Assembly: GCA_002269645.1 (NCBI GenBank)
Contig: NIVC01001088.1
Coordinates: forward strand, 1 to 64,000
Reading direction: 5' to 3'
Length of the DNA stretch: 64,000 nucleotides
From: Macrostomum lignano
Taxonomy: Eukaryota
Part shown: one piece after another, positions 15,928 to 53,292 of the stretch
Layout of the letters: every line of letters starts with the position of its first letter
Position numbering within the stretch: the first letter of the stretch is position 1
The notes under the pieces: model-generated
What the model was told of the DNA's origin: nothing
The model's input: the letters and a program-made list of their open reading frames with translations, nothing else
Databases searched by the model: none
Program-made: the position numbers and the translations under genes

Positions 15928-17744
15928 ATGGTGAAGGCTATGTTTGAGTTTTTGTCCTCGCTGGACTTGACAGTTATTAACAAGATTTACAGCAATTCTT
16001 ACACAGTTACAAGTTTGTTCAGGTATGGTAATTGTATTCATTTTTTTGTAAAAAAAATTGCAGTTTATAAAATACTGTTTATTAATTGGCATTTTTAGTG
16101 AGCTCCCAACGCTAGGCAAGCACCTGCTTGTCCGACTGCTTTTTATTCCATCTGTAATACCCAAGAAAGTGGTATTGGCCTGGTTTACTAAAGAGGCCCA
16201 GCAGTCTGAACTGCCGGAGGCTTTAAAAGTGCTTGAACGGCTTAGAATATTGGAATCAGTTGACGCTGCTGGTGGGATGGCCAGTTATCGGATAAAACCA
16301 GAATTTCAGGTCAGTTCTACTAAAGCTTACTTAGTTGCTTACTTACCAAATTTACCAAATTTAATGACTCGTCACAGAGATCTTTGTAGCTGGCGCCTCA
16401 ACTGTAGCTGGCGCCTCATCTCTGTAGCTGGGGCCTCATCTCTGTAGCTGGCGCCTCATCTGTAGCTGGCGCCTCTTCTGTAGCTGGCGCCTCATCTCTG
16501 TAGCTGGCGCCTCGTCTGTAGCTGGCGTCTCATCTGTAGCTTGCGCCTCATCTGTAGCTGGCGCATCATCTCTGTAGCTGGCGCCTCATCTCTGTAGCTT
16601 GCGCCTCATCTGTAGCTGGCATCTCATCTCTGTAGCTTGCGCCTCATCTGTAGCTGGCGCCTCATCTGTAGCTGGCGCCTCATCTGTAGCTGGCGCCTCA
16701 TCTCTGTAGCTGGCGCCTCATCTCTGTAGCTTGCGCCTCATCTGTAGCTGGCGCCTCATCTGTAGCTGGCGCGTCATCTCTGTAGCTGGCGCCTCATCTC
16801 TGTAGCTTGCGCCTCATCTGTAGCTGGCGCCTCTTCTGTAGCTGCCACCACCCCCTGACCCCCTCTGTAGCTGGCGCCTCATCTCTGTAGCTGGCGCCTC
16901 ATCTGTAGCTGGCGCCTCTTCTGTAGCTGGCGCCTCATCTCTGTAGCTTGCGCCTCATCTGTAGCTGCCGCCTCTTCTGTAGCGGGCGCCTCATCTCTGT
17001 AGCTTGCGCCTCATCTGTAGCTGGCGCCTCATCTGTAGCTGGCGCCTCATCTGTAGCTGGCGCCTCATCTCTGTAGCTTGCGCCTCATCTGTAGCTGGCG
17101 CCTCATCTGTAGCTGGCGCCTCATCTCTGTAGCTTGCGCCTCATCTGTAGCTGCCGCCTCCTCCGCCACCCCCTCTGTAGCTGGCGCCTTTTCTTTAGCA
17201 AAATCTGTAGCATCTGTATTTACTTTCTAATAAATGAACTATACGCCTCCGTCTGACAAAAAACAGGCTGTACTTTCTAAACAAATTCTCTCAAACTATC
17301 CCAGGAGAGCCTCCGTCGCGGACTGCAAGGCGGCGGCCAGGCCTGGTACGAAACCGGCTCAGTAGATTCGGCTGGCAGTGACAAAGGAGGTCGCAGCATC
17401 GAACAGTTGGACCAGTTCGCCAAAGAGCACTGGGACTCTCTGCTGCAGTTCATGGTGAACTCGCGCGAACTTGAACGGGGAAAAGTTAGCAAAGCTGTTG
17501 AACAGCTCCTAGTGGACTCCGGACTGTGCGTGCCCGGCGGTGGCGGCGGCGGCGGAAGTCGCGGCAGCGGCAGCGATGAAGATGACGACGAGGATGACGA
17601 CGGCGAGGGCGGCGGCGGCGGTGGCTTCACAGTCGGCGAAAGCGGCTTCCGGTTCCTGCTTTTGGATCAGGCCACTCAGGTGGGTGTCTGTCTGTCTGTC
17701 TGTCTGTCTTTCTGCCTGCCTGTCTGTTTTTCTGTCTGTCTGCC

Positions 17745-17805
<61 letters not shown>

Positions 17806-17840
17806 TTCTGCCTGCCTGTCTGTTTTTCTGTCTGTCTGCC

Positions 17841-17885
<45 letters not shown>

Positions 17886-17898
17886 TTCTGCCTGCCTA

Positions 17899-17961
<63 letters not shown>

Positions 17962-17996
17962 TTCTGCCTGCCTGTCTGTTTTTCTGTCTGTCTGCC

Positions 17997-18045
<49 letters not shown>

Positions 18046-18080
18046 TTCTGCCTGCCTGTCTGTTTTTCTGTCTGTCTGCC

Positions 18081-18121
<41 letters not shown>

Positions 18122-18132
18122 TTCTGCCTGCC

Positions 18133-18205
<73 letters not shown>

Positions 18206-18240
18206 TTCTGCCTGCCTGTCTGTTTTTCTGTCTGTCTGCC

Positions 18241-18277
<37 letters not shown>

Positions 18278-20831
18278 GCCTGCCTGTCTGTCTGCCTGCC
18301 TGTCTGTCTGTCTGTCTGTCTGCCTGTCTGTCTGTTTCCCTCTATATCAATCTGACATCTGCCTTTTTTGTGCTAATTCAGCTTTATGCCCTACCTGTCA
18401 ATACCAGTGGCTTTCCTCGTCAGCTAACCAGACGCTTCGAATGTGACTCGAACCCACCCTGTACCCTCGCTCGAACCGCAGGTGCAAACCATAGTAGTAC
18501 ATTTTCTACGCGCAGTGCAAAAAGGCTCGGGCAAGATGGCAGGCATTGACCTGTCCGAAGCCATCAACCTGTTGTTCCAGCTGAGCTCGGCCACCCTGGG
18601 CCGCAGCTATCCAACAGCCTGCCTGCCCAGTCCCAGCCAGCAGTCCTGCCTGCGGCACTGCCGCGCTCTCGGCCTGGTGTATTGGCGCAAACGCTATCCG
18701 GGCAGATTCTACCCGACTAGGCTGGCTACCAGAGCCACTTCCGGTCGGCTGGGACTGGCCGATTCTACCGGAAGTGCTGACGGTAGCGGCGGTGGTGACG
18801 GAGGTTATCTAATTGTTGAGACAAACTTCCGGGTGTTCGCATTTACTAATTCTCCACTTCAGGTGTGTGTAGGATTTGTTTAATCTTTTTCTAATATTAA
18901 TAAACCAGTGCCATTGTTATGGACAACAATAAACAGATTGACGCTGAACTCTCTGAGAATCTAGTGAATTATCTAGCTAATGATGTAGCTAATGATGTAG
19001 CTAGTGATCTAGTTAATGATCTAGTACTTCGGGTGTGTCATAAGTAATGTCACTGATGTGAAAACAGACGAACTTGCAATCGCAGATGAACAAAACTGTA
19101 CCACTCAACAACATAGAGTCCCCCAATATCAATCACCCTCTGGCAGTGCTCATACAGCTTGTCCACCTCAGCCTGCAGGTGTTTTTCCTCCAACTGCCAT
19201 AACCAGTGCAACGCAGCCTGTTTTACCTCTTCATGGTTTGCGAAACTCTTCTTGGAAAAGTCAGCCTTCAGCCATTTGAACAGGAATCTCTTGCAAAAGT
19301 TGAAGTCTGGGCTGTAGGGACTGTCAGAGAATATTCACTTGCTGTGCAGGCAGAAAATTCGAAACAGCCTTCAGGTGTGCAGCCGTGCGGTGTCCATCTG
19401 CCACAGAACCTCGTCCAGGTGACATGGATTTGACCGGAGAGTGCACCAGAGGTCCCCAGTGTGCCGGAAAAAGTCGATAAAGTACTGGCCATCGACCTTG
19501 GTGTTCGGTGGAGTTGTGCAGATGGAGACTCGTTTGTTTGGCGTGAAGGCTACCAGCAGCATGATCTTCTTGTCCGAGATGGACTTCCTAGTCACCATCG
19601 GCCTGAAGTCCCCAGCTCCCAACCAGCAGCGATTGTCTGCCTTGCTGCCCTTGCCATCCAGGTGGAGCCAGCTTTCATCCTCAGCAACCAGGCAGTTTAG
19701 GATGTCATTCAAGCCCCGGCTGCTAAACACCTTGCGGATCTGCTTGGTGCAGGCGTCTTGTCGAGATTCATGATGATTTTTGTTCGCTGCATGGACAATT
19801 TTTCATCGCGTTGCACTTGCTAAATCTGCTTGGCGTATTCTTGCGATACCTTGGGCCATAAACACCTATGCATGTCTCAAATGCACTGCTATTGCTTCAC
19901 TAAGTATACTTTGCAGCTACACTACCCACAAGTTCATGTGCCTACATATTTTAGACAGAGGCCTGCAGTGACATTATTTATGACACACCCGAAGTAAATG
20001 ATGTGAATTATCTAGATAATGATCTAGTAAATGATCTAGTGAATGATCTAGCTATTGATCCAGTTAATGATCTAGTAAATGATTCAGCTAATGATATAGT
20101 GAATATCTAGTAAATGATCTAACTAATGATCTAGCTAATGATCTAGGGAATTATCTAGTAAATGATCTAGCTAATCATCTAGCTAATGATCCAGCTAATG
20201 GTCTAGCTAATGATATAGCTAAAGATCCAGTTAATGATCTAGCTAAGGATCCAGCTAATGGTCTAGCTAATGATCTAGCTAAGGATCCAGCTTAAAAGTC
20301 GAAATCCACTTGTTGACATGTTTGCACAATTTGTCAAAGTTGCAGTTATTTAATTTTACGAGTACAATACGACGTAAAATGCCTCTGTCACTGCAGGTAG
20401 CTCTGGTTGCCCTATTCACCCAGCCGCTGTACCGATTTCCCAATCTATTCTGCGGTCACATCACCCGCCAGAGCGTGGCTGACGCCCTGTCTCACGGCAT
20501 CACGGCTAGGCAACTGCTGTCTTTTATGACCGCCAGCGCGCACCCGCAGCTGCGGCAGAGACAGCTGCCAACCGTGCTACCGCCCACAGTGTGCGACCAG
20601 ATGTTGCTATGGGAACGCGAGCGCAATCGGTTCACTTTCACTGACAGCGTTCTGTACGAAAAGTTTGCTAATAAACGCGATTATCAAGCGGTGAAGTCGT
20701 ACGCGTCCGATTGCGGCGTGCTGTTGCATAGCGTTGATGATCGAATGATTCTGGTGGTTACCAATGCCGGCCACGACGATATCTGCCGATTCTATAAGCG
20801 CTACAAGCAGGAGTCCACCAGGGGGAACTGA
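15928..20831 (+). CDS. GTF2H4: General transcription factor IIH subunit 4 (p52/Tfb2); 5 coding exons
   Basis: Exons 15928-16022, 16099-16309, 17305-17679, 18482-18862, 20397-20831 with consistent phases. Motifs MFEFLSSL..SLFR|ELPTLGKHLLVRLLF, LDQFAKEHWDSLLQFMV, GFRFLLLD, FYPTRLA, GYLIVETNFRVFAFTNSPLQ, YRFPNL, PPTVCDQMLLWERERNR. The exact start Met is uncertain. Confidence 0.96.
16381..17190. repeat. 18/20-bp minisatellite (tgtagctggcgcctcatc[tc]) in GTF2H4 intron 2
   Basis: Direct tandem repeats. Confidence 0.95.
17686..18336. repeat. (TCTG)n microsatellite in GTF2H4 intron 3
   Basis: Direct observation. Confidence 0.97.
18958..20292. repeat. 12-bp minisatellite (ctagctaatgat-type), split by a mariner insertion at 19027-19994
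   Basis: The same unit occurs at 18958-19024 and 19997-20292 on either side of the transposon. Confidence 0.85.
19027..19994 (-). mobile_element. Tc1/mariner-family DNA transposon, degenerate, 968 bp
   Basis: 29-bp TIRs cttcgggtgtgtcataagtaatgtcactg (19027-19055) and the reverse complement at 19966-19994, with 1 mismatch. TA duplication at 19025-26 and 19995-96. Transposase remnants AEDESW, MDTARLH and SPYSPDFN, with stops and frameshifts. Confidence 0.92.
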
Positions 20832-20967
20832 AGCTTTGCCTTACTCTCTTTGTTTGGGATTTCTTCGAATCAGGAATGATCCCCGAAGATTCTGTGATTG
20901 TTCTACTGAAACCTCGCAAATTTTAGAAAAATCGTTATGGATTTCCGCCACGTCTTTAAACGGGATT

Positions 20968-21530
20968 GCCCCGAATCCTAAGGGATTCCCCCGAGTTCCC
21001 AATTATCCTAATAGATTGCCCTAAATCCTAAGGGATTCCCCCGAGTTCCCAATTATCCCAATAGATTGCCCTAAATCCTAAGGGATTCCCCAGAATTCCC
21101 AAGAATCCTAATGGATTGCCCCGAATCCTAAGGGATTCCCCCGAATCCTAAGGGATTCCCCCGAATCCTAAGGGATTCCCCCGAATCCTAAGGGATTCCC
21201 CGAATCCTAAGGGATTCCCCGAATCCTAAGGGATTCCCCGAATCCTAAGGGATTCCCCGAATCCTAAGGGATTCCCCCGAATCCTAAGGAATTCCCCCGA
21301 ATCCTAAGGGATTCCCCCGAATCCTAAGGGATTCCCCCGAATCCTAAGGGAGTTCCCCGAATCCTAAGGGATTCCCCCGAATCCTAAGGGATTCCCCCGA
21401 ATCCTAAGGGATTCCCCCGAATCCTAAGGGATTCCCCCGAATTCTAAGGGATTCCCCCGAATCCTAAGGGATTCCCCGAATCCTAAGGGATTCCCCCGAA
21501 TCCTAAGGGATTCCCCCGAATCCTTAGGGT
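20968..21530. repeat. 19/20-bp minisatellite cccc(c)gaatcctaagggatt with an internal palindrome
   Basis: Direct tandem repeats; GAATCC-taag-GGATTC inverted core. Confidence 0.95.
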
Positions 21531-22261
21531 CTCCCTGGATAAAGAGTTAAATGTTTTTTCGTTTCATGCGTCTAACTAATTAAATGCATCCAATAGATGA
21601 AAAAATTCAAGCATTTATTTTTTGTAAAAAACTGATAATATTACACAATTTATTATCAGTAATACTGTACTAATAAATGTATTACTGCTTATAATACTAA
21701 AACTGTTATTATAAAAATATATCATAAGTAGAGATCTTCGTCTGCATAATTTTATGACTATACTTTTTTATAACTATTTATTTTAGTTAGGGAATTTTTT
21801 CCAATTAGTACTGCTTCAGAAAGTATAGTCTAAAAATAGTAATATCCTTAAATGGCAGTAGATATTTAGCGAGCGGCTGAGTTGCATATTTGAAGTTTTT
21901 CTATTCTTTATTAAGTCTTTTAGTGTGTGCGTTTGTGGTGGGTGTGCAGTTTTTTTGGCACTGGGCCAACAACACTAGATTGCATTAGAGTTTGCTTGTT
22001 GAGTGGACCAGTCGTTCTCACGCACTTTCTCTCTGTGTGTATGTGTTATTCTCTCTCTAAAGGCCCTTTTTTCTCTCCTCTTTGGGTCATTAGGTATTAC
22101 TCTGCTTTTGTATCATGCAAGCTCTTATTTGCACTCTTCTTTATCTGTTTAGCATTTGTACTGCAGATTGGTTGAGTTTAGTAATCGATATTGGAGCAAT
22201 TAGTACTTGTTAGTCTTAGTGAGGGTAGGGTGTCTTATTCTGGATTTTTGCTCTTGTGTAA

Positions 22262-23209
22262 TGACGTTTCTTTTACTGTAGTTGTGTAATATCAGTTTGT
22301 TAATGATTGTAGAATATCAGATTACTGTAGTTGTGTAATATCAGATTACTGTAGTTGTGTAATATCAGGTTACTGTAGTTGTGTAATATCACATTACTGT
22401 AGTTGTGTAATATCAGTTTGTTAATGATTGTAGAATATCAGATTACTGTAGTTGTGTAATATCAGGTTACTGTAGTTGTGTAATATCAGGTTACTGTAGT
22501 TGTGTAATATCAGGTTACTGTAGTTGTGTAATATCAGGTTACTGTAGTTGTGTAATATCAGATTACTGTAGTTGTGTAATATCAGGTTACTGTAGTTGTG
22601 TAATATCACATTACTGTAGTTGTGTAATATCAGATTACTGTAGTTGTGTAATATCAGATTACTGTAGTTGTGTAATATCACATTACTGTAGTTGTGTAAT
22701 ATCAGATTACTGTAGTTGTGTAATATCACATTACTGTAGTTGTGTAATATCAGATTACTGTAGTTGTGTAATATCACATTACTGTAGTTGTGTAATATCA
22801 GATTACTGTAGTTGTGTAATATCACATTACTGTAGTTGTGTAATATCAGATTACTGTAGTTGTGTAATATCACATTACTGTAGTTGTGTAATATCAGATT
22901 ACTGTAGTTGTGTAATATCACATTACTGTAGTTGTGTAATATCACATTACTGTAGTTGTGTAATATCACATTACTGTAGTTGTGTAATATCAGATTACTG
23001 TAGTTGTGTAATATCACATTACTGTAGTTGTGTAATATCAGATTACTGTAGTTGTGTAATATCACATTACTGTAGTTGTGTAATATCAGATTACTGTAGT
23101 TGTGTAATATCACATTACTGTAGTTGTGTAATATCACATTACTGTAGTTGTGTAATATCACATTACTGTAGTTGTGTAATATCAGGTTACTGTAGTTGTG
23201 TAATATCAG
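22262..23209. repeat. 24-bp minisatellite (ttactgtagttgtgtaatatcasa), about 39 copies
   Basis: Direct tandem repeats; produces the spurious (LILHNYSN)n ORF. Confidence 0.97.
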
Positions 23210-23299: not shown

Positions 23300-25231
23300 A
23301 TGAAAACTCGCAGAAAGAAGCAGCACCAGACTCCAATCGAATCGTCAAGCTCTTCATCATCGGCCTCGTCAGAATCATCGGATTTAGAATCGTTCACCTG
23401 CCCAGTCTGCCTGTCGGTGATGGTGAAGCCGGTGCTGTTGCCATGCCAACACGAGCTGTGTCTGGGCTGCCTGATGCAGGCCTGCTCAGGCGACTGGTGC
23501 AGCCTGGCCTGCCCCCTGTGCCGCCGCCGGCTGTCCGTGTGGATGCGCCGAGCTCGCAATCCGGAGCTGCTGGTCAACCAGGACAAATGGCGGCGCATTC
23601 AACAGCTGCACCCGCGGCTAGTTGAAGTTGTCGAGGCTGGCGGCAGCGCCGACAACGGGGCCGAGCGGCGTCAGCTGGCGCAGCCGGGCGAGCTGCAAGC
23701 TGAGTGGCAAGCCGCGGTGGACGCCTTGACTGCCGAGCGTCGGGCACAGCAGGCGACCGAGGAGGCGGCTTCGTTGGCGCTGATTCGCCGACTGCGCCTG
23801 GCCGAAGCTACGGCGACAGCGATGTCACCGGCGGAGCAGAGCATGGCTGAGGATATCGCTCTGGCTGACGGTGAGTGCTGTGGTGGCCTCTGAAAAATCG
23901 CCACTTCTTTGAAAAGATTGCTCTAATCTATCACCATGAGAATTACTTTGTAAAAAATTCCCCTCCGTTAAAAACACCTCAAAATTCTCTTTTAAAAAAC
24001 CGCCTTTAAAAATCGCCTCTAAAGAACCCCCCCCCCCCTAATTAAAACTCCTTTCTAAAAAATCGGCCATTAAAAATCGTCTCCTAATGAATCTCCACAT
24101 AAAAAATCTCCCCCCCTAAAGAATCTCCGCAATTAAAAATCGCCCCCTAAAGAATCTTCACATTAAAAATCGCCCATAAAAATCTTCACATTAAAAATCT
24201 CCCCCTAAAAATCTCCGCAATTAAAAATTCCCGCCTTTAAGAATCTCCCCATTAAAAATCGTCTTTAAAGAATCCCAATTAAAATCGTCCCCTAAAGAAT
24301 CGCCCAAATAAATTTCACCACTAAAAATCTCCCAATTAAAAATCGCCCCCTAAAAATCTCCCAATTAAAAATCGCCCCCTAAAAATCTCCCCATTAAAAC
24401 TCGCCCCCTAAAATAACCCCATTAAAAATCGCCCCTTAAGAACCCCCGCATTAAAAATCGCCCCTTAAGAACCCCCGCATTAAAAATCGCCCCTTAAGAA
24501 CCCCCGCATTAAAAATCGCCCCTAAAGAATCGCCCCGAAAAGAATCGCCCTTAAAATCGCCCTTGAAAAATCGTCCCTAAAGAATCGCTCTATTAAAAAT
24601 CACACCCCTCCCAGCGGCGATCCCAGACGAGCCCCAGTCCGAGCCAGGCTACCCGCTCGCCGCTCCGCCAATTCGCCGTCACGACTCCGACGAGTCTTCG
24701 GCAATTGTCGACAATCGTTGTCGCCTGTTCTCCGCCACCGCCGCCGCCTACCTGCGCTGCGACTCGGTTGACAGCATCGGGCCGGAGCTCAATCAGCATT
24801 TCCGGCCAATTCAAGCGATGCCGCTGACGCCAACTAAGCCGGCGAATTCTACGCCGGCATCCACAGCGTCAGGATCGGCGGCTACGCCAGGCTCCGTCAG
24901 GAAAGTCGTGCACCGCCCGAAGGCTACTAAACGCCAGAGTCGCAGAGCTGCCGCGGCCGCTGCCGCCGCCGCTTTGATATCTGGCGGCGGCCGGCCTCGA
25001 CGGCTGCTCCGGTCGGCCAGCGTTCAAGAAACCGCCTCGACATCGTCGACAACTTCAACGAAACCGTCGTCTCGTTGTCTGCGCAGCCAGATGTCTGTAG
25101 TGGTGGAATCGCCGGCCGCTACTGCTGGCTTAGAAGAGAGCCTGCTAGTTGAAGCCGAGAGCTGCTCTGCGGGTAGCGGCGGCTACAGCTTGCGAAAGCT
25201 TCATCAACAACAACAGACAAAGTTTGAGTAA
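23300..25231 (+). CDS. RNF168: RNF168/RNF169-like RING E3 ubiquitin ligase (two confident exons; 3' end uncertain)
   Basis: Exons 23300-23870 and 24615-25231 (or to a donor after 25227). C3HC4 RING CPVCLSVMVKPVLLPCQHELCLGC..CPLCRRRLSVW; LVNQDKWRRIQ; UMI/MIU1-like QPGELQAEWQAAVDALTAERRAQQATEEAASLALIRRL; motif DSIGPELNQHFRPI..TPTK. Confidence 0.85.
23950..24598. repeat. Degenerate A-run/C-run minisatellite (attaaaaatcgccccctaaagaa-type) in the RNF168 intron
   Basis: Direct observation. Confidence 0.85.
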
Positions 25232-25334
25232 GGCTTAAATACTGCAAGTGTCCTATTCTTTCTCATTTACCCTGTCTGCAATATTTGTCTTGTGAATTAC
25301 GGTTATAAATTATCTTTTAATTTTTCCACCTTAC

Positions 25335-25880
25335 TGTCCTTACCCTCTTCCCTCTTAACCCTCTTCCCTCTTTACCCTCTTCCCTCCTTACCCTCTTCCC
25401 TCTTTACCCTCTTCCCTCCTTACCCTCTTCCCTCTTTACCATCTTCCCTCTTTACCATCTTCCCTCTTTACCCTCTTCCCTCTTTACCCTCTTCCCTCTT
25501 TACCATCTTCCCTCTTTACCCTCTTCCCTCTTTACCCTCTTCCCTCTTTACCCTCTTCCCCCTTTACCCTCTTCCCTATTTACCCTCTTTACCCTCTTTA
25601 CCCTCTTCCCTCCTTACCCTCTTCCCTCTTTACCCTCTTCCCTCCTTACCCTCTTCCCTCTTTACCCTCTTCCCTCTTTACCCTTTCCCCCCTTTACCCT
25701 CTTCCCTCTTTACCCTCTTTACCCTCTTTACCCTCTTTACCCTCTTCCCTCTTTACCTTCTTCCCTATTTACCCTCTTCCCTCTTTACCCTCTTCCCCTT
25801 CTTTACCGTATTCCCCCTCGTCTCTCCCCTCTGCCCTCTTCCTTCTTTACCCTCTTCCCCTCTTTGCCCTCTTCCCTTTC
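25335..25880. repeat. Polypyrimidine repeat (ttaccctcttccctct)n
   Basis: Direct observation. Confidence 0.95.
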
Positions 25881-26777
25881 TTTAATCACCCACATTTCTA
25901 TCCTCTTCTGGTCTCTCATTTTGTATTTTAAAAGTTCTCTAATAATTTCCCCTTCCACTAAGCCAACAGCAGTTAGTCTTATTTGCCAAAGGCTGCAGCA
26001 CACTTCTAGTCCTCCAAAAAAAATGGCTATTGTTTTCGCTTCAACCAACATGTATTGCCGATTGTAGATATTTATTAATTGCAAAATATTTAATTTTTAA
26101 TGTATTTTTTTTGTACCTGAGTATTGTATATGCTATAATTTTTATACATTTGTAACGCAATAAACAGCTTATCAATATAGTCAATATAGCTATTTAAAAT
26201 TCTAATATTAATGAGCATTTTCTAAGCTTATCAGTAGTATGTCAAGCGTGCTTTATATTTCTCTTATTTAATGAGTTTTTGAGTTTTTGTAATCTCCAGC
26301 GTTATGCTGATTTTTTCACTTGGCCATGTATGATTTATTTAATTTACCAATGACTTAGTTGCCATGGCATCTATTATAATTTATAAAGCATTTTATTACT
26401 TAGCTCCATAGTTTAAAAGTAGATTGTTGCTTTTAATTTTGCCGTCGTGTAAACTAATTTATATATTGCTATTAGTAGTTGACTTTAAAATGTTTCTGGA
26501 ACAGCTGTTTCTTTATTTAATGCTTGCTTATTTATTGATTTACTTAACTTTATTCTTTATTAATTACTTCGTAAATGATTTTGTTAGTGCTCTTTTAATT
26601 TTTTCAAGTTTTTTCTGAAATTGCCAATTACTGAAGGAGCAGCAAGGATCTCCAAATTGCCTGGCTATTGTGTAAGATTTGTTCTGGTCTCAGTTCTTTG
26701 ATTTGCAAATTTGAAAAGCATTTACTTTGATATCTGGATTTTAGGGCTAAGTTGTCAGTTTTTTTCTTTTTTGAGGG

Positions 26778-27082
26778 TCAAGCAACTCCGCTTTGAGCCA
26801 TGGCATCTCAGCAACTCCGCTTTGAGTCAATTGGCATCTCAGCAACTCCCCATTGAGTCAATTGGCATCTCAGCAACTCCCCATTGAGTCAATTGGCATC
26901 TCAGCAACTCCCCATTGAGTCAATTGGCATCTCAGCAACTCCCCATTCAGTCAATTGGCATCTCAGCAACTCCCCATTCAGTCAATTGGCATCTCAGCAA
27001 CTCCCCATTCAGTCAATTGGCATCTCAGCAACTCCCCATTCAGTCAATTGGCATCTCAGCAACCCCCCAGAAAGCCATGGCA
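26778..27082. repeat. 31-bp minisatellite (ctcagcaactccccattsagtcaattggcat)
   Basis: Period of 31 measured between 26931 and 26962. Confidence 0.93.
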
Positions 27083-27303: not shown

Positions 27304-28131
27304 ATGGACCAGCAGCAGCAGCAGCAGCAGCAGCAAGACTCTTCTGTTGTGTCAGATGGCGCCTCAGCCACCAGTCCGCAGCAGCCGCCAGTTACGGTGA
27401 AATGCGTGGCAGTTGGAGATTCCTGCGTAGGCAAAACAGCCAGCCTAATCAGCTACACAACTAACGGCTTCCCCAATGCCTATACGCCAACCACATATGA
27501 CACTTATTCTATTGATGTTCGCGTTGATCACCGCTGGTGCCGGGTGGCTCTGTGCGACACTCCCGGCTTGGACCATTTCGAGCAGATCCGCCCCTTAGCC
27601 TACCCGGACGCGCACGTGTTTCTGTTGTGCTTCGCAGTCGCCCAGCCGGAGTCGCTGGAGTCCTTGAAAGCCAAGTGGCTGCCGGAGCTGAATGAGCATG
27701 CTCCGGCGCACGCCGCTCGGCTGCTTATTGGTTTGAAATCCGATCAACGCGACGACGCGTCGATATTGTTAGACTTGTCGTTGAAGAATTCTGCACCGGT
27801 TAGTAAAGAGGAGGCCGAGAAGGCCTGCAGACAGCTTGGCGCACTGGAGTACATCGAGTGCAGCGCGCTGACTCAGAAATGTCTCAAAGAAGTGTTCGAC
27901 ACGGCCATCTGGGCCGGTTCGAGTGTTCAAGAAGCCCTGGCTACTGGGGCGGCGGCGTCCGGCAAGTCTGGCAAGTCGCGAGGCAAGAAATCCAAAAGCT
28001 CAAAGGTGAGCGACCAGAGCGGCTGCAAGTTGATGGCTAAAAGAGGCGCGGATGGCGCCAGGCAGCAGCAGCAGAAATCTTCCGGCTTGTTGCAACGACT
28101 TTTCTGCGTGGCCGATCACTCCGCGAACTGA
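27304..28131 (+). CDS. RhoU/RhoV (Wrch-1/Chp)-family small GTPase; intronless ORF with atypical catalytic residues
   Basis: VKCVAVGDSCVGKT, SYTTNGFP, LCDTPGLD, YIECSALTQKCLKEVFDTAI align ungapped to the RhoU/V core. N-terminal extension; basic K-rich tail ending LFCVADHSAN (no CAAX). AATAAA at 28139-28144. Confidence 0.92.
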   Translation: MDQQQQQQQQQDSSVVSDGASATSPQQPPVTVKCVAVGDSCVGKTASLISYTTNGFPNAYTPTTYDTYSIDVRVDHRWCRVALCDTPGLDHFEQIRPLAYPDAHVFLLCFAVAQPESLESLKAKWLPELNEHAPAHAARLLIGLKSDQRDDASILLDLSLKNSAPVSKEEAEKACRQLGALEYIECSALTQKCLKEVFDTAIWAGSSVQEALATGAAASGKSGKSRGKKSKSSKVSDQSGCKLMAKRGADGARQQQQKSSGLLQRLFCVADHSAN

Positions 28132-28494
28132 GCGAATTAATAAATCAATTATCGATTTTTATTGCTTATCTATTTTCATTAATTAATAATAATTTATTTC
28201 TCTTCTAATTCTATTGTGCATTGTTTTTAACCTGGGTAAAAACTTGCTTTTTAAGGTTTTTTTAGCACCTGCCTTGTTGCAGAGTAACATGTAGAATGTA
28301 AAGTATTGTGTGTACTCTGAATTTTTCTCCTGCTATACATTTACGAGTCCAGAGATTTTTATTTTCTGTCTGCCTGGATCGTTAAATAATCAAATATTAT
28401 TTGATTATTCCCCACATGTTGATATAATGGGCCTCGTTCTTCTTATATTAATTTTGAAGGAGTTATGAAACTTGTTGGTCAGTAAGTTACTCTT

Positions 28495-29190
28495 ATTGCC
28501 CTTTTCCACTTTTACCCATTTCCTCTTTCTCCTCTCCCGCCTTTCCCCCTCTTTCTCCTCTCCCCTCTCTTCCCCTCTCCCCTCTCCCCTCTTTTCCCCT
28601 CTCCCCCTTTCCCCTCTCCCCTCTTTCCCCCTCTTTCCCCTCTTTCCCCTCTTTTCCACTCTCCCCTCTTTTCCCTCCCCCTCTTCCCCTCTTTCCGCTC
28701 TTCCCCTCTGTCCCCTCTTCCCCCTTTTCCCCTCTTCCCCTCTTCCTCTTTTCCCCTCTTCCCCTCTTCCCCCTTTTCCCCTCTTCCCCTCTTCCCCCTT
28801 TTCCCCTCTTCCCCTCTTCCTCTTTTCCCCTCTTCCCCTCTTCCCCCTTTTCCCCTCTTCCCCTCTTCCCCCTTTTCCCCTCTTCCCCTCTAACCCTTTT
28901 TCCCCTTTTCCCCTCTAACCCCTTTTCCCCTCTTCCCCTCTTCCCCCTTTTACCCTCTTTCCGCTCTTCCCCTCTGTCCCCTCTTCCCCCCTCTTCCCCT
29001 CTTCCCCCTTTTTCCCCGCTTTCCGCTTTTCCCCTCTGTCCCCTCTTTCCCCTTTTCCCCTCTTCCCCTCTTCCCCCTTTTCCCCTCTTTCCGCTCTTCC
29101 CCCTTTTCCCCTCTTCCCCTCTTCCCCCTTTTCCCCTCTTTCCACTCTTCCCCTCTGTCCCCTCTTTCCCCTCTTTTCGTCCTTTCCTTT
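28495..29190. repeat. Polypyrimidine repeat (ttcccctc/ttttcccctc)n
   Basis: Direct observation. Confidence 0.95.
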
Positions 29191-29982
29191 TTCCCTTGAT
29201 CTTTTTTATTTTCAAAGGAATTCCTTTCTTCTCTCGTGGCTATTAAAATGATCAATTTTTATTATTGACTTTTTAAAATAAAATCGATTTGTTTAGTATC
29301 TCTTGATCATAAAACACTCAGTGATGCAATAATATAGCCCAACTTCGCGTGCTTGCATGTAAACGGAAGATGATTTGTAGCGTGTTAAAATTTTTGACCT
29401 ATCAAGTATATTTTATCATGTTTTATCGTATTGAGATGCATACATTTGTGTAAGTATTATTGTACGAGTAACAATATGCTTGTCAATGAGCTCAGTTTCA
29501 CAATAAAATGTATTAATAATGATTTAACAGTATATAAAGTTCTATAACGGAAATTGTCTTGAAAAGTGCATTGCTAATGTTCTTTTCGTAAACCCAGCCA
29601 TCGTTAAAAACTTAAATACATCGATATCCTATGCGTCAGAAATAAATTAATAAACAAACACCTACACATATTGTTTATTAGACAATTTTGTGATAATTCG
29701 AGTGTATTAATACAGTTGGTTTCCTGAACTTTTTTAGCTAATAGTTTGTAACTTTAATTAGTAAGTTTTATTATCTAAAAGTTTTGTTACTTCAGTTTTA
29801 TTGCATGTTTTAATCTATGTTATATCCACTGTGCTCACAGCTGCTCCGTGTGCTGCAAATATTACAATATAACGACTTGTATTCGTTACAATTCTCTCTA
29901 ATAATACTACTGACGCCTTTCACTCAGTAGTATGATTAATAACCCACTACATTTTTGGGGAGTACAGCGAGCGGCAATATTG

Positions 29983-30028
29983 TGTCTGTCGGTCTGTCTG
30001 TCTGTCTGTCTGTCTCTGTCTGTCTGTC

Positions 30029-30115
<87 letters not shown>

Positions 30116-30174
30116 GACTGTGTGTCTGTCTGTGTGTCTGTCTGTCTGTCTGTCTGCCTGTCTGTCTGTCTGAC

Positions 30175-30235
<61 letters not shown>

Positions 30236-30268
30236 GACTGTCTGCCTGTCTGTCTGTCTGCCTGCCTA

Positions 30269-30301
<33 letters not shown>

Positions 30302-30315
30302 GACTGTCTGTCTGC

Positions 30316-30349
<34 letters not shown>

Positions 30350-30435
30350 GTCTGTCTGTCTTTCTGTTTATCTGTCTGTCTCTCTGCCTGCCTATGTCTG
30401 TCTGTCTTAGTGTCTGTTTGTTTTTCTGTCTGTGT
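29983..30435. repeat. (TCTG)n microsatellite
   Basis: Direct observation. Confidence 0.97.
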
Positions 30436-30919
30436 GTGTGTATGTTTCGTTGATCTTCCGAAAGAACCCCAGTTGATTCAGTTGAATGTTTATTTCATCT
30501 ACTATTCTCAACAGTTTTGGCTTACCAGCCGTATTCACATAGTAAAAAGATCTCCCCGAAAAATGCAGAGAAGGCATGCAGTGTTTATATATCAAATAGT
30601 ATTTTATATTACATTCTGCAATTTGCGTCTAATTCCATGCAAACCTGATGCTGTTAAGCTACTGTAAGTAGTAACAAAACCAGTTTTTTTAAATGATTTT
30701 TTGTAAAACGAAATTGAATGCATGATTTTGCTTGTTTGTTTTTCAACTACCAATCTGTTTATTTATTTAATGTATATCATAAATAAAAGCTTGTTTCAGA
30801 ATTTACCGCCACTATATGTTGGCTTTTGCCTGGTGTAGCTTAATTTTAACCTGACTTCTTCACGCTCAAGAACTTAATCAAGTTTTTTATTTACTTGTCT
30901 TTTCATTGAAATTACATTT

Positions 30920-31560
30920 CCAGATCTCAGTTGCTGGGTCACCAGCTGCCCAGATCCTCAGTTGCTGGGCCAGCCTCCCAGATCCTCAGTTGCTGGGCCA
31001 GCCTCCCAGATCCTCAGTTGCTGGGCCAGCCTCCCAGATCCTCAGTTGCTGGGCCAGCCTCCCAGATCTTCAGTTGCTGGGCCAGCCTCCCAGATCCTCA
31101 GTTGCTGGGCCACCAGCCTCTCAGATCCTCAGTTGCTGGGCCAGCCTCCCAGATCCTCAGTTGCTGGGCCAGCCTCCCAGATCCTCAGTTGCTGGGCCAC
31201 CAACCTCTCAGATTCTCAGTTGCTGGGCCAGCCTCCCAGATCCTCAGTTGCTGGGCCACCAGCCTCTCAGATCCTCAGTTGCTGGGCCAGCCTCCAGATC
31301 CTCAGTTGCTGGGCCAGCCTCCCATATCCTCAGTTGCTGGGCCAGCCTCCCAGATCCTCAGTTGCTGGGCCAGCCTCCCAGATCCTCAGTTGCTGGGCCA
31401 CCAACCTCTCAGATCCTCAGTTGCTGGGCCACCAACCTCTCAGATCCTCAGTTGCTGAGCCAGCCTCCCAGATCCTCAGTTGCTGGGCCATCAGCCTCCC
31501 AGATCCTCAGTTGCTGGGCCATCAGCCTCCCAGATCCTCAGTTTCTGGGCCACCAGCCTC
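30920..31560. repeat. 28/32-bp minisatellite (cagatcctcagttgctgggccagcctcc)
   Basis: Direct tandem repeats. Confidence 0.95.
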
Positions 31561-32555
31561 CCTCTTAGCAGGCCAGAGCTCAGATAAAGAATTTGACGCG
31601 GAATTCCTTTTGGCACACAGCACAGTCGGAGCAGGTGAACCCAGCTCCAAATCTCTCTTATCTCTGTACTCGTACTTTATTCATCTGGAATAGCGAAATG
31701 AGCCGAGCCAGGAAGCCATATAAATTAATTAGTATTGATTGCTTAGCTGAATAAGGCCACGGCTTTGGGAGAAGGGAGAAGGGCGGATCAGGGTTTGTTG
31801 GGGGCCGATGGGGGTCTGATTGTAGCATCTGCAGAGACTAGTTGTTGTCCGCCCAGCAACTGCAGCCAGTATTTCATAGTTGGGAGTCTCAAATTCCCTG
31901 TCTCTCTCTCCACGCTATGCTCTAGCTTTGGGGGGGGGTGTACTCACTCACTCGCTCGCATGTACTCTTCTCAGTCTCTGCCTTCCTCTCTGCCGGCAAA
32001 TTTTATGCTGGCTATTTAATATCAAATATAATCTATAGCTGGGATCTGTGTATTAGATATCTATAGCTGTAGCCGGGGTATAATTCAGCATCATCATATC
32101 TAAGACTCCGATTGGCTAGTTGCTGGGGGGGGGGTTGGTTGGGGACGAACTAGGGAGAAAAAAGAGCTCGTTCTTTGCAGCATCCCTGGAGTGCCATCCC
32201 AAATTTTCTTCTCTCCCTTCTACTGTAGGGGAGTAGAAGTACACTTCCCAGCTGCTCCCATCTCTCCCCAAGCCGCTATGCAGTGCATGAGACAGGCAGG
32301 CAGACATGCTGGGATAGCTGAGCTAGGGGAAGTCTGAAAGAGCTGATGAGGGGAACAGAGGGACCAGGGGTAGAGAACAGAGGAGGAGAAAGGACTGGTG
32401 GGTACGCGGATGAAATAGGTCCAGTTTTTAAAAGCAGACTTCTCACACCCCCCCCCCTCTTATGCTGTCGACGCATTTTGGCGATCCAAGCTGTTGCTTC
32501 TAAAGGCAGAGTTTTTGGCTTCTATAGCTGCTATTGAGCTTTGACTGATTAAATA

Positions 32556-35500
32556 ATGCAGCCCTGGGCCGCCGTTGTGATCTCACTGCTCACTGTGATT
32601 GTGATTGCCCTGCTGGCCTACATCATCTTGAGGATATTTTTCCCTAACCAGCTGGAGACTCTGTTCGCTATAGGAGAGGAGCGCCTCTCCCTGACTAAAT
32701 CCGACAGCCGGGCCAACTACTATGCTGCGGTGAGCTGGGGTCTGTGTAGCTGCCTCATCTGTCCATGTGCCGATCTGTCTTCATGGCTGCGCATCTATCC
32801 ACCTCATCCAGCCATCCATCTACCCATCCACCCATCCATTCCCCCATCCACCCATCCATCCTTCCACCCACCCACCCATCCATCCATCCATCCATCCCCC
32901 ACCCATCCATTCCCCCATCCACCCATCCATCCTTCCACCCACCCACCCATCCATCCATCCATCCATCCCCCACCCATCCATCCACCCATCCATCCATCCA
33001 TCCCCCATCCATCCATCCACCCATCCATCCATCCACCCGCCCATCCATCCCCCACCCATCCACCCATCCATCCACCCGCCCATCCATCCACCCGCCCATC
33101 CATCCACCCGCCCATCCATCCCCACCCATCCATCCACCCATCCATCCATCCACCCGCCCATCCATCCCCCACCCATCCATCCACCCATCCATCCATCCAC
33201 CCGCCCATCCATCCCCCACCCATCCATCCATCCACCCGCCCATCCATTCCCCACCCATCCATCCATCCATCCACCCGCCCATCCATCCATCCATCCATCC
33301 ATCCACCCGCCCATCCATCCCCACCCATCCATCCATCTATCCACCCGCCCATCCATCCATCCATCCATCCATCCATCCACCCGCCCATCCATCCATCCAT
33401 CCATCCATCCATCCCCCACCCATCCATTCACCCATCCATCCATCCACCCGCCCATCCATCCCCCACCCATCCATCCACCCGCCCATCCATCCCCCACCCA
33501 TCCATCCACCCGCCCATCCATCCCCCACCCATCCATCCACCCATCCATTCACCCGTCCACCCATCCCCCACCCATCCACCCATCCATTCAACCACCCATC
33601 CATTCAACCATCCATCCACCCGCCCATCCATCCCCCACCCATCCATCCATCCTCCCATCCATCCACCCGTCCATCCATCCACCCGTCCATCCATCCACCC
33701 GCCCATTCATCCCCCACCCATCCATCCATCCACCCATCCATTCACCCATCCACCCATCGATCCATCCATCCATACATGCATACGTTTAGCCGATCTACCG
33801 AACAATATTTTCATCTAATAATCCTAATTAGCAAGTGCTATTATCCCCAGCATCCAAACTGCATCATACCGTAATCATATTTCCCAAGTGCCAATTCGAG
33901 CAGTGCAAATTCAGTGGAGTGCCGGCTTTAGCGACACTCCAGAGCCGCAGGGAGAGTGCAGAGGCAGCAACATTCACCCTCTCCCCCATCAGCTGTCACT
34001 GCTGTCAGGATGCCGTCTAGCTCTGGAGCCTCTGTAATTTGATTTCCAATCCCACTTCCCTCCCGCACTGCCTGCTACTAGAGGCCTTGCATATGAGAGA
34101 AAGTGACAGCCAGTCCCGCATGGCTGAGTGACCCTCCTGACGGCTGGCATTCAGAGTCCTTGGGGGCTGCACAACACGATGGGGCTCCTGGGCCTAGGGA
34201 GAGTTTCTGCGTGCGTGACTCTTCGCACTTTTTTGTGTCCCTTGACAGTCAGTGCAGTGCAACAACTCATAGCTGCCGCCTTAGTTCCTGTCTCTCCTCT
34301 TCATCTGACATCTCGCTGCGAGGGTTCTACATGTATTAGTGGGGAAGGTTGGCGCCCACCTTGAAGGCGCCATTTTATTCAAGTAACGCCAGCACCGTGA
34401 GGCGCCAGCATTAGAGGCGCCAGAATTAGAGGCGCCAGCACCATGAGGCGCCAGCATTAGAGGCGCCAGCACCATGAGGCGCCAATACCATGAGGCGCCA
34501 GCATTAGAGGCGCCAGCACCATGAGGCGCCAGCATTAGAGGCGCCAGCACCATGAGGCGCCAGCATTAGAGGCGCCAGTACCATGAGGCGCCAGCATTAG
34601 AGGCGCCAGCACCATGAGGCGCCAGCATTAGAGGCGCCAGCACCATGAGGCGCCAGCATTAGAGGCGCCAGCACCATGAGGCGACAGCATTAGAGGCGCC
34701 AGCACCATGAGGCGCCAGCACCATGAGGCGCCAGCACCATGAGGCGCCAGCACCATGAGGCGCCAGCACCATGAGGCGCCAGCATTAGAGGCGCCAGCAC
34801 TATGAGGCGCCAGCATTAGAGGCGCCAGCACCATGAGGCGACAGCACCAAGAGGCGCCAGCCAGGCGCCAGCACCATGAGGCGCTATATGGATGTACTTT
34901 TGTCTTGTTTACTGTCACCATTTCAAGGACGGGAGTCGGGACGCCGATGCTGCATATCAACATGGGTTTAGGCGGCCCCTGAACCCTCACCTGGATGCAC
35001 CCCATGCGAGTAGTCTATCCGCGACTATTTAAACTCATGCAGTGGCCATCAGTCAAGACCTATAGGTGATGGTGTCTGACAGGTTGGCTATAGCCCTTGT
35101 CAGTCAAATGGAGGAAAATCTTGATTCCAGAGCTATGTATAATTTTACTGAGAATAGACTGTGATTACGACGAACTTTGCTGAGTGACTAATAATTATCA
35201 GCGCTTTGGATTTTTCAGCATGTCATACATATGGAGACAGTATAGTAAATGTATAGTCGATATAGTATTAACTTTCAATATTTTTTTTCAATCTAGAGTT
35301 ATAAAATGACCAGATTTTCAGACTAGAGTCATAAAATGACCAGATTTTCCATCTAGAGTGATAGATGGACCAGATTTTCAATAAAGAGTCATAAAATGAC
35401 CAGATTTTCCATCTAGAGTGATAGATGGACCAGATTTTCAATAAAGAGTCATAAAATGACCAGATTTTCCATCTAGAGTCATAGATAGACCAGAGCTTCA

Positions 35501-38500
35501 ATCTAGAGTCATAAAATGACCAGATTTTCAATCTAGAGTCATACAATGACCAGAGCTTCAATCTAGAGTCATAAAATGACCAGATTTTCAATCTAGAGTC
35601 ATAAAATGACCAGATTTTCAATCTAGAGTCATAAAATGACCAGATTTTCAATCTAGAGTCATACAAAGAATAAATTTCTAATCTAGAGTCATGCATGCAG
35701 AATGACCAGAGGTTTCCAATTTAAAGTCATGCAATGACCAGATTTTCTATATCCAATCATTAAATGATGAGATTTCTAGTATTACCAAGTTTTTTAATTA
35801 GAAATCACTATCTAAAATGAAACTCCTCATCTTTTAATCCTTGGAGCAGCAGCACCCGGAGACGGGCGCTCAGGTGGCGCAGACGGCGCCAATCGGGCGC
35901 CAGGGCGCCTCTGCCGGTGGCAGCTTCTCGCGGCGCGAATTCCGAGACGATGCCGTTGAGGACAGCGACACCGGGCCAGGGCGTCACAGCCCCGGAGACA
36001 CCACCGGTAAGTCATTCGGGACCTGGGATGAGGGTCACATGCGGCAGAATTTAGTGTCAGCAATGGCGCCAAATTGAATTTCAAAAGTGGCGCCAAACTG
36101 GATGTCAGCTATGGTGTTAAATTAAATCTCAACAATGGCGCCGAATTAAATGCCAAAAATGGCGCCAAAATGAATGTCAATAAAAGCGCCGTACTATCCA
36201 AACCGTTTTCTTTTGTTAGAGTGTCAGTAAGGGTTAAAGCGCCAAGGGAGGCAGAGACGCAGTAGAGAGATAATGAGGGATGCGCCAAAAATCGAGTGGC
36301 GCCAAAAGACGTGTGTCAGAGTGGCGCCAAAAGACGTCTGTCAGAGTGGCGCCAAAAGATGACTGTCAGAGTGGCGCCAAAAGACGATTGTCAGAGTGGC
36401 GCCAAAAGACGACAGTCAGAGTGGCGCCAAAAGACGACTGGCAGAGTGGGACAAAAGACGACTGTCAGAGTGGCGCCAAAAGACGTGTGTCAGAGTGGCG
36501 CCAAAAGACGTCTGTCAGAGTGGCGCCAAAAGATGACTGTCAGAGTGGCGCCAAAAGACGATTGTCAGAGTGGCGCCAAAAGACGACAGTCAGAGTGGCG
36601 CCAAAAGACGACTGGCAGAGTGGGACAAAAGACGACTGTCAGAGTGGCGCCAAAAGACGTGTGTCAGAGTGGCGCCAAAAGAGGTGTGTCAGAGTGGGAC
36701 AAAAGACGTGTGTCAGAGTGGCGCCAAAAGACGTGTGTCAGAGTGGCGCCAAAAGACGTGTGTCAGAGTGGTGCCAAAAGACGATTGTCAGATTGGCGCC
36801 AAAAGACGACTGTCAGAGTGGGACAAAAAAGACGACTGTCAGAGTGGCGCCAAAAGACGATTGTCAGAGTGGCGCCAAAAGACGTGTGTCAGAGTGGCGC
36901 CAAAAGACGTGTGTCAGAGTGGCGCCAAAAGACGTGTGTCAGAGTGGCGCCAAAAGACGATTGTCAGAGTGGCGCCTAAAAGACGACTGTCAGAGTGGGA
37001 CAAAAAAGACGACTGTCAGAGTGGCGCCAAAAGACGATTGTCAGAGTGGCGCCAAAAGACTTGTGTCAGAGTGGCGCCAAAAGACGACTGTCAGAGTGGC
37101 GCCAAAAGACGACTGTGATCAACTTATTAAACAGCAATAAAAAGATTCGTTCGCCCTCCGTTCATGCGCCCGCAGGCTCCGAGTACGAGCCCGGACACAA
37201 CCTTCCCCGCGTTGGCTCGGCCGAGTCGCTGGCCTCGGACACATCCGTGATGGACATGCAGCCGGACGTGTCGCCAATCGGTCAGGTGGAGATCGGGCTT
37301 GAGTACGACAGGGACGTCTCCGAGCTGGTGGTGTCGCTCATCCAGGGTCGGGATCTGGCCTCCAGCGACGCCACCGGAGTCTGCGACATGGACTTCTTCG
37401 CCAGCCTGGCCGTAGTGCCCGACGTGGCCAACATGAAGTCCCAAACTAAGGTGAGCGGCTCTTGACGAAAACTACGAGCCGTAAATAGATCATTAGAATC
37501 TAGATCTATAAATCAGATAGATCATTAGATCATTAGAGTCTAGATCTATAAACCAGATAGATCATTAGATCATTAGAATCTAGATCTATAAACCAGATAG
37601 ATCATTAGAATCTAGATCTATAAACCAGATAGATCATTAGAATCTAGATCTATAAACCAGATAGATCATTAGATCATTAGAATCTAGATCTATAAACTAG
37701 ATGGATCATTAGAATCTAGATCTATAAACCAGATAGATCATTAGAATCTAGATCTATAAACCAGATAGATCATTAGATCATTAGAATCTAGATCTATAAA
37801 CCAGATAGATCATTAGATCATTAGAATCTAGATCTATAAACCAGATAGATCATTAGATCATTAGAATCTAGATCTATAAACCAGATAGATCATTAGATCA
37901 TTAGAATCTAGATCTATAAACCAGATAGATCATTAGATCATTAGAATCTAGATCTATAAACCAGATAGATCATTAGATCATTAGAATCTAGATCTATAAA
38001 CCAGATAGATCATTAGATCATTAGAATCTAGATCTATAAACCAGATAGATCATTAGATCATTAGAATCTAGATCTATAAACCAGATAGATCATTAGATCA
38101 TTAGAATCTAGATCTATAAACTAGATAGATCATTAGAATCTAGATCTATAAACCAGATAAATCATTAGATCATTAGAATCTAGATCTATAAACTAGATGG
38201 ATCATTAGAATCTAGATCTATAAACCAGATAGATCATTAGAATCTAGATCTATAAACCAGATAGATCATTAGATCATTAGAATCTAGATCTATAAACCAG
38301 ATAGATCATTAGATCATTAGAATCTAGATCTATAAACCAGATAGATCATTAGATCATTAGAATCTAGATCTATAAACCAGATAGATCATTAGATCATTAG
38401 AATCTAGATCTATAAACCAGATAGATCATTAGATCATTAGAATCTAGATCTATAAACTAGATAGATCATTAGAATCTAGATCTATAAACCAGATAAATCA

Positions 38501-53030: not shown

Positions 53031-53292
53031 AGGATAGTGCTGCCTAATTAAACCTCGGAGATTGCATCGCGAAATTGGCGCTTTACTCGTACACGAGCCA
53101 AGCCATCTTGCTCGGATGGCCAGCTTCCTTTCAGAGCGTCTTTTAGAAGCAGACAAAAATATAAAAATCCACTGAAGTCCAACACACTTGTCTTTTCTAT
53201 AGAAAAATGTAATTTTCTCGTTTATCTACTAATAATAACCCAAAAATAACGCCTTCTCAATACCAGGTTAAAGAAGAATAAGAAGAGCAAAG

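Follow-up and report, generated by a model that had tools for sequence, protein, structure and literature searches.

We describe here a gene for a Rho-family small GTPase that lies in a 64,000-nucleotide stretch of the Macrostomum lignano genome (assembly GCA_002269645.1, contig NIVC01001088.1, positions 1 to 64,000 of the forward strand; the whole of this stretch is called the window) and in which the residues at positions 12, 59 and 61 (Cdc42 numbering) are all substituted. An original prediction, made from the DNA letters alone, had proposed that the gene encodes a constitutively active member of the RhoU/V family. Our best inference, which we consider probable though well short of certain, is that the product is hydrolysis-deficient, unresponsive to GTPase-activating proteins (GAPs) and locked in its guanosine triphosphate (GTP)-bound form. 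We lean this way because GTPase-defective Rho proteins are recognized in the literature, at the sequence level, by their lack of G12, A59 and Q61. Membership of the RhoU/V clade, as judged from G-domain comparisons, is well supported, and the gene is real, functional and under strong purifying selection.

Catalytic residues and the predicted nucleotide state

The open reading frame (ORF) runs without interruption from ATG to TGA through 275 codons, and the protein is annotated on this contig of the assembly with record coordinates identical to those of the window. In a Pfam search the 275-residue product matched Ras (2e-36), and Ras and Roc were the only families matched. Its best PDB matches were RhoU (2q3h, 1.9e-53), Cdc42 (8e-53) and Rac1/3 (about 1e-50), with the alignment to RhoU and Cdc42 spanning residues 31-207 and including the Rho insert helix. 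A Foldseek search with an AlphaFold2 (AF2) model (m57aa52da499c) returned the Rho G-domain fold, with template modeling (TM) scores of 0.82-0.86 to Rac and Cdc42 structures; the predicted local distance difference test (pLDDT) score of the model is 93-97 for residues 100-190. The gene and the protein features on which the argument turns are as follows.

27304..28131 (+): complete single-exon coding sequence (CDS), 275 amino acids plus stop, of a divergent small GTPase of the RhoU/V clade; supported by the ORF, the Pfam Ras match, the PDB matches, the annotated protein and the ratio of nonsynonymous to synonymous substitution rates (dN/dS)
27415..27438 (+): G1/P-loop GDSCVGKT, residues 38-45; S40 corresponds to G12 and C41 to A13, and K44 and T45 are kept (from the sequence)
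27481..27507 (+): switch I, YTPTTYDTY; T63 (T35) is kept, with A36T, F37Y and N39T relative to RhoU/Cdc42 (from the alignment)
27556..27573 (+): G3/switch II DTPGLD, residues 85-90; P87 corresponds to A59 and L89 to Q61, and D85 and G88 are kept (from the sequence)
27733..27744 (+): G4 motif, LKSD instead of TQxD, with K and D kept, in the xKSD form of Rnd3 CKSD (from the sequence)
27751..27798 (+): Rho insert region DDASILLDLSLKNSAP, RhoU-like (DVKVLIEL...), from the alignment to 2q3h and the helices at H146-160 in the model
27862..27870 (+): G5 motif SAL, inside ECSALTQK (from the alignment)
27964..28005 (+): polybasic stretch KSGKSRGKKSKSSK, residues 221-234, in the disordered C-terminal extension (pLDDT about 50)
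28084..28110 (+): GLLQRLFCV, a degenerate form of the RhoU/V tail motif, which pairs with G-WKK-xCCFx in the tail alignment and is followed by six extra residues, ADHSAN

The P-loop, the switch II motif and the codons of S40 and L89 are as the original prediction had them: S40 is encoded by TCC (27421-27423) and L89 by TTG (27568-27570). P87 is encoded by CCC (27562-27564). A comparison with the Gly and Gln codons also bore out the claim that the changes at G12 and Q61 each require at least two base substitutions, since a two-base difference separates TCC from every Gly codon and TTG from every Gln codon. The alignment to Cdc42 had been described as gapless with a constant offset of 28, and this did not hold. 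Alignment to Cdc42 and RhoU requires one 1-residue insertion (APAHAARLL against CPK-TPFLL), so that the offset is 28 to about residue 135 and 29 thereafter.

The residues named in the prediction as retained for binding Mg and nucleotide are present: K44, T45, T63, D85 and D147 correspond to K16, T17, T35, D57 and D118 of Cdc42, and S187-A188-L189 to its SAL. F56, likewise listed as a retained F28, has indeed the classical Rho residue, but it is not a neutral retention, as Y28 is found in 110 of 111 RhoU-like relatives; a 2024 review suggests that Y28 in RhoU/V may underlie their rapid cycling. The same relatives support the statement that canonical members keep the catalytic residues, with G12 in 109 of the 111 and both A59 and Q61 in all of them. 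This agrees with a review in which the GTPase-defective Rho proteins are Rnd1-3, RhoBTB1/2 and RhoH, all lacking G12, A59 and Q61, and RhoU/V are said to keep these residues; the fast-cycling RhoU, RhoV, RhoD and RhoF are there counted in the hydrolyzing group. With the non-conserved residues Ser, Pro and Leu at positions 12, 59 and 61, the flatworm protein falls under the published definition of the defective class. Further changes, which the original prediction overlooked, are A13C, T115L and Q116K in the G4 motif LKSD, and A36T and F37Y in switch I.

The best-supported scenario is as follows. The residues expected to bind Mg2+ and the guanine nucleotide are all kept (GxxxxGKT, T35, DxxG, xKxD and SAL), so the protein would load GTP. 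S12 would clash with the transition state and with the arginine finger of a GAP, P59 would stiffen the start of switch II and L61 would fail to position the attacking water. The protein would then stay GTP-bound, with no cycle driven by guanine nucleotide exchange factors (GEFs) and GAPs, as in Rnd, RhoH and RhoBTB, and its output would be set by the amount made, its location and its rate of degradation. Attachment to membranes would be through the polybasic stretch (221-234) together with C268, which is probably S-acylated (palmitoylated). The switch I changes A36T, F37Y and N39T suggest an altered set of effectors. We count as further support for a GTP-locked state that C. elegans CHW-1, with the milder natural change G12A, already acts as if partially activated. 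Among the PDB matches of the flatworm protein were Q61L-bearing Cdc42 and Rac structures, and among its database matches was a designed Rac1 Q61L construct.

Several observations weigh against this interpretation: (i) of 92 positions with a conservation of 95% or more in the 111 RhoU-like proteins, 27 are changed, including S18A and L19S in helix alpha1, T115L in G4 and P50W; (ii) AF2 pLDDT drops to 49-63 over residues 41-70, which comprise alpha1 and switch I and contain S18A, L19S, A36T and F37Y, and because of these two findings nucleotide affinity or switching could be altered unpredictably; (iii) GTPases of the Era, GIMAP, septin and translation-factor types have a hydrophobic residue at the Gln position together with DTPG, yet they hydrolyze GTP by other means; (iv) no Logan transcript contig encodes the protein or falls in its cluster, and no expression value for Mlig034410 or Mlig009472 was found in the published M. 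lignano supplements searched; and (v) beyond the three M. lignano copies described below, neither a word-indexed search of 5.8 billion proteins nor the 50% cluster representatives yielded an orthologue of more than 53% identity. Absence of an orthologue is not established by point (v), because the word-indexed search is lossy: a control with the last exon of the Tfb2 gene in the window (17304-20831, + strand) gave only three matches, at 47-53% identity, and missed the obvious self-match, M. lignano Tfb2 itself. A library of 50% representatives would in addition hide sequences that are 50-90% identical.

Points (i) and (ii) would also be expected if the protein were a pseudo-GTPase in which nucleotide binding or switching is impaired and which, independently of nucleotide, acts as a scaffold or titrates GEFs or effectors. 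Pro59 moreover adjoins G60, which must be flexible for GTP to induce the switch. However, GTPases of the EF-Tu type switch normally with Pro at position 59, and the direct ligands of phosphate, Mg and guanine are kept in the flatworm protein (K16, T17, T35, D57, G60, K116, D118 and SAL). The first G4 residue of Rnd3 is also non-canonical (CKSD), yet Rnd3 binds GTP tightly. On balance we regard a pseudo-GTPase as unlikely.

A second alternative, which we rate as equally unlikely, is that the protein still cycles, with hydrolysis merely reduced or else supplied by a partner, by dimerization or by another residue, making it a slow, regulated switch. Point (iii) bears on this, in that DTPGL is the form that switch II takes in hydrolyzing GTPases of the Era, GIMAP, septin and Toc types; Ser at position 12 is among the milder substitutions in Ras; and other Rho-family proteins (P0134, P0136 and P0180) combine A59P with an unchanged Q61, which indicates that Pro59 alone is tolerated. 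Against this, the scaffold is that of a Rho protein and not of a HAS (hydrophobic amino acid substituted) GTPase, combined loss at 12, 59 and 61 defines the hydrolysis-dead members of the Rho family, and in Cdc42 and Rac the change Q61L is routinely used to abolish GTPase activity. Membership of the HAS-GTPases themselves (TRAFAC families such as Era, EngA, MnmE, FeoB and GIMAP) was rejected: L89 and DTPG are present, but the Pfam matches are confined to Ras and Roc and the best homologues are all Rho proteins. A GTP-locked protein continues to be the reading we prefer.

Three genomic copies, selection and transcription

The 90% identity cluster of the protein contains two more M. lignano proteins, PAA93634.1 and PAA52428.1, encoded on other contigs, and the gene order Tfb2, RING-finger gene, Rho gene, C2-domain gene is common to all three loci. 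The M. lignano assembly is known for its redundancy, and three syntenic copies fit with this. The three proteins have the same G domain and differ by one V32L substitution and by the number of glutamines (8, 9 or 11) in an N-terminal tract, which is the sole difference in length among them.

27310..27336 (+): polyglutamine tract, Q3-Q11, a (CAG)n/CAA tract in the 30-residue N-terminal extension; length differs among the copies

At the nucleotide level the three coding sequences differ by about 22 substitutions, 21 of them synonymous and one non-synonymous, giving a dS of 0.04-0.10, a dN of 0-0.0016 and a dN/dS of 0-0.04 (binomial P about 8e-13 against neutrality). The flanks of the three copies are 86-96% identical and contain many indels. 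The codons for S40, P87 and L89 are the same in all three copies.

These comparisons bear on the possibility that there is no functional gene here at all, and that the ORF is a decaying retrocopy, a pseudogene or an artefact of assembly or sequencing. The CDS is intronless, as opposed to three coding exons in spiralian orthologues, the searches turned up no orthologue of this very divergent protein, and Logan transcript contigs are lacking, all of which could be expected of such a sequence. Nevertheless, the full ORF is kept in three independent genomic copies, 21 of 22 substitutions are synonymous while the flanks have diverged by 4-14% with many indels, and the gene model comes from an RNA-seq-based annotation. 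We therefore consider a non-functional locus very improbable. Specifically, a sequencing error is excluded because three genomic copies share the S40, P87 and L89 codons, in line with the earlier expectation from codon distances, and a pseudogene is excluded because nearly all of the substitutions are synonymous; relaxed dN/dS had been named in the original prediction as something that would count against it, and the values obtained are the opposite of relaxed.

With regard to transcription, M. lignano gene models were built from RNA-seq transcript assemblies, with novel transcripts below 0.5 reads per kilobase per million (RPKM) discarded. Since the model of this gene is derived from RNA-seq, at least one of the three copies is very probably transcribed. 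In a literature search we found no paper that mentions this protein or Mlig034410/Mlig009472.

Placement in the RhoU/V clade and relation to other Rho proteins

In a neighbor-joining (NJ) tree built on 174 G-domain columns, with 17 RhoU-like sequences set against Cdc42, Rac, RhoA, Rnd3 and 17 other Rho representatives, the flatworm protein grouped with all 17 RhoU-like sequences to the exclusion of other Rho proteins in 97 of 100 bootstraps, in 96 of 100 when other long branches were removed, and in 197 of 200 in a further run; this is a distance method applied to a long branch, and the sample is without vertebrate RhoV, TC10, Mtl and CHW-1. Identity to RhoU-like proteins, at 47-53%, hardly exceeds that to Cdc42 (49%) and Rac1 (46%). 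Consistent with the grouping, the RhoU-like signatures TNGxP and LCDTxGxD and the insert are present, and the tail GLLQR-LFCV aligns to the subfamily ending G-WKK-xCCFx. One Cys of that ending is kept (C268), with the W, the KK and the first Cys gone, and only four of 15 RhoU-specific signature residues remain. The protein ends in GLLQRLFCVADHSAN, and C268 (28105-28107) lies 7 residues from the end, so that there is no CAAX box. Assignment to RhoU/V, and a tail that keeps the Cys of LFC without a CAAX box, were both part of the original prediction, and both stood up to this comparison (bootstraps of 96-98% and a homologous tail). Taken together, the data point to a protein that descends from the RhoU/V (Wrch/Chp) lineage and has diverged strongly from it.

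The resemblance to RhoU/V extends beyond the tree, in that RhoU 2q3h is the best PDB match, the top database matches are RhoU-like, and there are an N-terminal extension, a RhoU-like insert and an alignable non-CAAX tail. For the two ends of the protein the correspondence is partial: RhoU/V have a proline-rich, SH3-binding N-terminal extension and a C-terminal one that ends in a palmitoylated CCFV/CFV-type motif, and the flatworm protein has a single PQQP and a degenerate tail with one Cys. The differences are also substantial. The flatworm protein has G12S, A13C, A59P and Q61L, in contrast to RhoU/V, in which G, A and Q are retained and GTP is hydrolyzed; it has F28 rather than the Y28 of the subfamily; identity is about 50%; and its tail, besides the residues lost, carries six extra ones. 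A comparable basic stretch is seen in the C-terminal extension of relatives as well.

A further difference concerns gene structure. In Lottia and Lingula the RhoU-like genes comprise three coding exons, which extend across 21 kb and 8.9 kb respectively (as separate tblastn blocks), and one intron follows switch I and the other precedes DTAGQ; in M. lignano the CDS forms a single block with neither intron, as had been noted from the ORF, and its intronless state is older than the divergence of the three copies. A retrogene origin is possible and compatible with this loss. Neither a parent gene nor a poly(A) remnant or target-site duplication came to light, the M. lignano genome not having been searched for a RhoU paralogue. 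One could imagine that the gene founded a flatworm-specific, Rnd-like subfamily that arose independently out of RhoU/V, by retroposition in which both CDS introns disappeared in one step, with the catalytic triad and Y28 being lost afterwards, and that it is the sole RhoU/V-derived gene in Macrostomum. We find this extended scenario doubtful, if somewhat less so than the two biochemical alternatives considered above. If it were true, RhoU/V signaling in the Macrostomum lineage would be a constitutive switch controlled purely by expression and localization.

There is precedent for Rho proteins that have lost all three catalytic positions. In Rnd proteins GTP hydrolysis is absent, whether intrinsic or stimulated, and control is through expression, modification and localization. 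Rnd3, whose sequence was verified against PDB 2v55, shares with the flatworm protein a Ser at position 12 (GDSQCGKT in Rnd3), the xKSD form of G4 and the loss of all three catalytic positions, and by analogy the predicted action would be the same: always GTP-bound, with control by expression, localization and turnover. In contrast, switch II is DTPGLD in the flatworm protein and DTSGSP in Rnd, and the C-terminus is HSAN and not a farnesylated CAAX box (CxxM). Membership of the Rnd group is ruled out by 39% identity to Rnd3, as against about 50% to RhoU, and by joint grouping in 1 of 200 bootstraps. The likeness to Rnd is convergent. RhoH and RhoBTB1/2 are classed as GTPase-defective by their missing G12, A59 and Q61, the same logic as we apply here, but they belong to other clades; RhoH, found only in vertebrates, ends in the CAAX box CKIF, BTB domains are present in RhoBTB, and the flatworm protein has neither feature. 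The claim that its origin was independent of the Rnd, RhoH and RhoBTB groups is well supported.

Closer parallels come from the RhoU/V lineage of other invertebrates. CHW-1, the sole Chp/Wrch orthologue of C. elegans, naturally has A18 (equivalent to G12A), and genetic work from two groups indicates partial constitutive activity. It resembles the flatworm protein in that both are invertebrate members of the RhoU/V lineage in which position 12 is naturally occupied by a residue other than Gly, but in CHW-1 that residue is Ala and not Ser, there is no N-terminal extension, and only position 12 is reported as changed, unlike positions 12, 13, 59 and 61 in the flatworm protein. The cnidarian RhoUV proteins of Nematostella and Exaiptasia are said to have G3-box substitutions and to be without GTPase activity in a 2020 survey, which cites Fort 2017. 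A RhoUV that cannot hydrolyze GTP had thus been claimed before in non-vertebrates; that claim concerns another phylum and is itself sequence-based, and we draw the likeness from the description.

Uncharacterized natural variants were also found among database relatives. Four Schistocerca species have a RhoU-like protein (P0137) with DTAGLD (Q61L), F28 and a TAYDT switch I, the last two being common to the flatworm protein save for TTYDT in place of TAYDT. A well-expressed RhoU-like protein of Centruroides (P0047) has the flatworm P-loop GDSCVGKT (G12S/A13C) with a normal Q61; a Ruditapes protein (P0238) combines GDACVGKT with DTSGLD (G12A/A59S/Q61L); and a Phlebotomus protein (P0180) and three environmental sequences have DTPGQD (A59P with Q61 intact). 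The proteins from these four genera are about 42-51% identical to that of the flatworm and fall within or next to the RhoU group in the NJ tree, and their variants would appear to be separate events or long-branch neighbors. When 137 G domains, drawn from the 150 best 50%-identity cluster representatives, were scored, position 12 or 61 was changed in 38 and all three positions were changed in 15. Among the sequence sets examined, S12, P59 and L61 occurred together on a RhoU/V background in the flatworm protein only. The assumption that RhoU/V proteins were not known to carry such changes is incorrect, as the G12A of CHW-1 and the cnidarian G3-box changes had been published. Earlier description in invertebrate RhoU/V was listed in the original prediction among the findings that would count against it, and this partly applies.

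The flatworm protein is an undescribed, lineage-restricted addition to a known functional class and not a new kind of system. It opens up no new type of mechanism; the Rnd/RhoH/RhoBTB class and what these substitutions do can be found in any textbook. If biochemistry confirms the predicted state, the gene would be one more case in which a cycling Rho GTPase has independently become a hydrolysis-dead, always GTP-bound signaling protein, in this case from the RhoU/V lineage and in a spiralian that is open to transgenesis and RNA interference. The flatworm gene and the locust, scorpion, clam and sandfly variants, together with CHW-1 and cnidarian RhoUV, would suggest that RhoU/V-type GTPases repeatedly lose catalytic residues, which would fit the view that RhoU/V are controlled mainly by abundance and localization.

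Other features of the locus

Two short elements close to the ends of the CDS complete the feature list. The 30-residue N-terminal extension is polyglutamine- and Ser-rich and has a single PxxP motif, possibly all that is left of the SH3-binding region of RhoU/V.

27376..27387 (+): PQQP, residues 25-28, the only PxxP of the N-terminal extension (from the sequence)
28139..28144 (+): AATAAA hexamer, candidate polyadenylation signal, 8 nucleotides past the stop codon (from the sequence)

The Rho CDS is a G+C-rich island (0.53-0.58) in DNA that is otherwise A+T-rich and laden with repeats. About 235 bp upstream of the start codon is a 31-bp minisatellite (26781-27069; 9.4 copies, 97% matches) that is far longer at the two other loci, where it measures about 0.5 kb and about 3.4 kb. 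Long CT-rich low-complexity arrays with periods of 8, 16, 17 and 25 flank the gene at 28499-29176 and 25340-25877 and give rise, on either strand, to long ORFs that are spurious, such as 28493-29215 (-) and 25292-25885 (+). More tandem arrays (periods 4, 12, 20, 24, 28-31 and 59) occur less than 10 kb from the gene, at 20006-23209, 24067-24609 and 29983-35775. This abundance of arrays is in line with the 15% of simple or tandem repeats reported for the M. lignano genome.

The upstream neighbor is the RING-finger gene (23300-25231, + strand), annotated as encoding 401 amino acids and found in the same position in all three copies; its exon-1 ORF (23300-23893) matches zf-RING_UBOX and zf-C3HC4. 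Tfb2, further upstream, is GTF2H4, encoding subunit 4 of TFIIH. At 49029-56362 there are large ORFs of 833 amino acids (53861-56362, + strand), 516 amino acids (51606-53156, - strand) and 375 amino acids (49029-50156, - strand), none with a Pfam match, which could represent a repeat or mobile element or read-through of low-complexity sequence.

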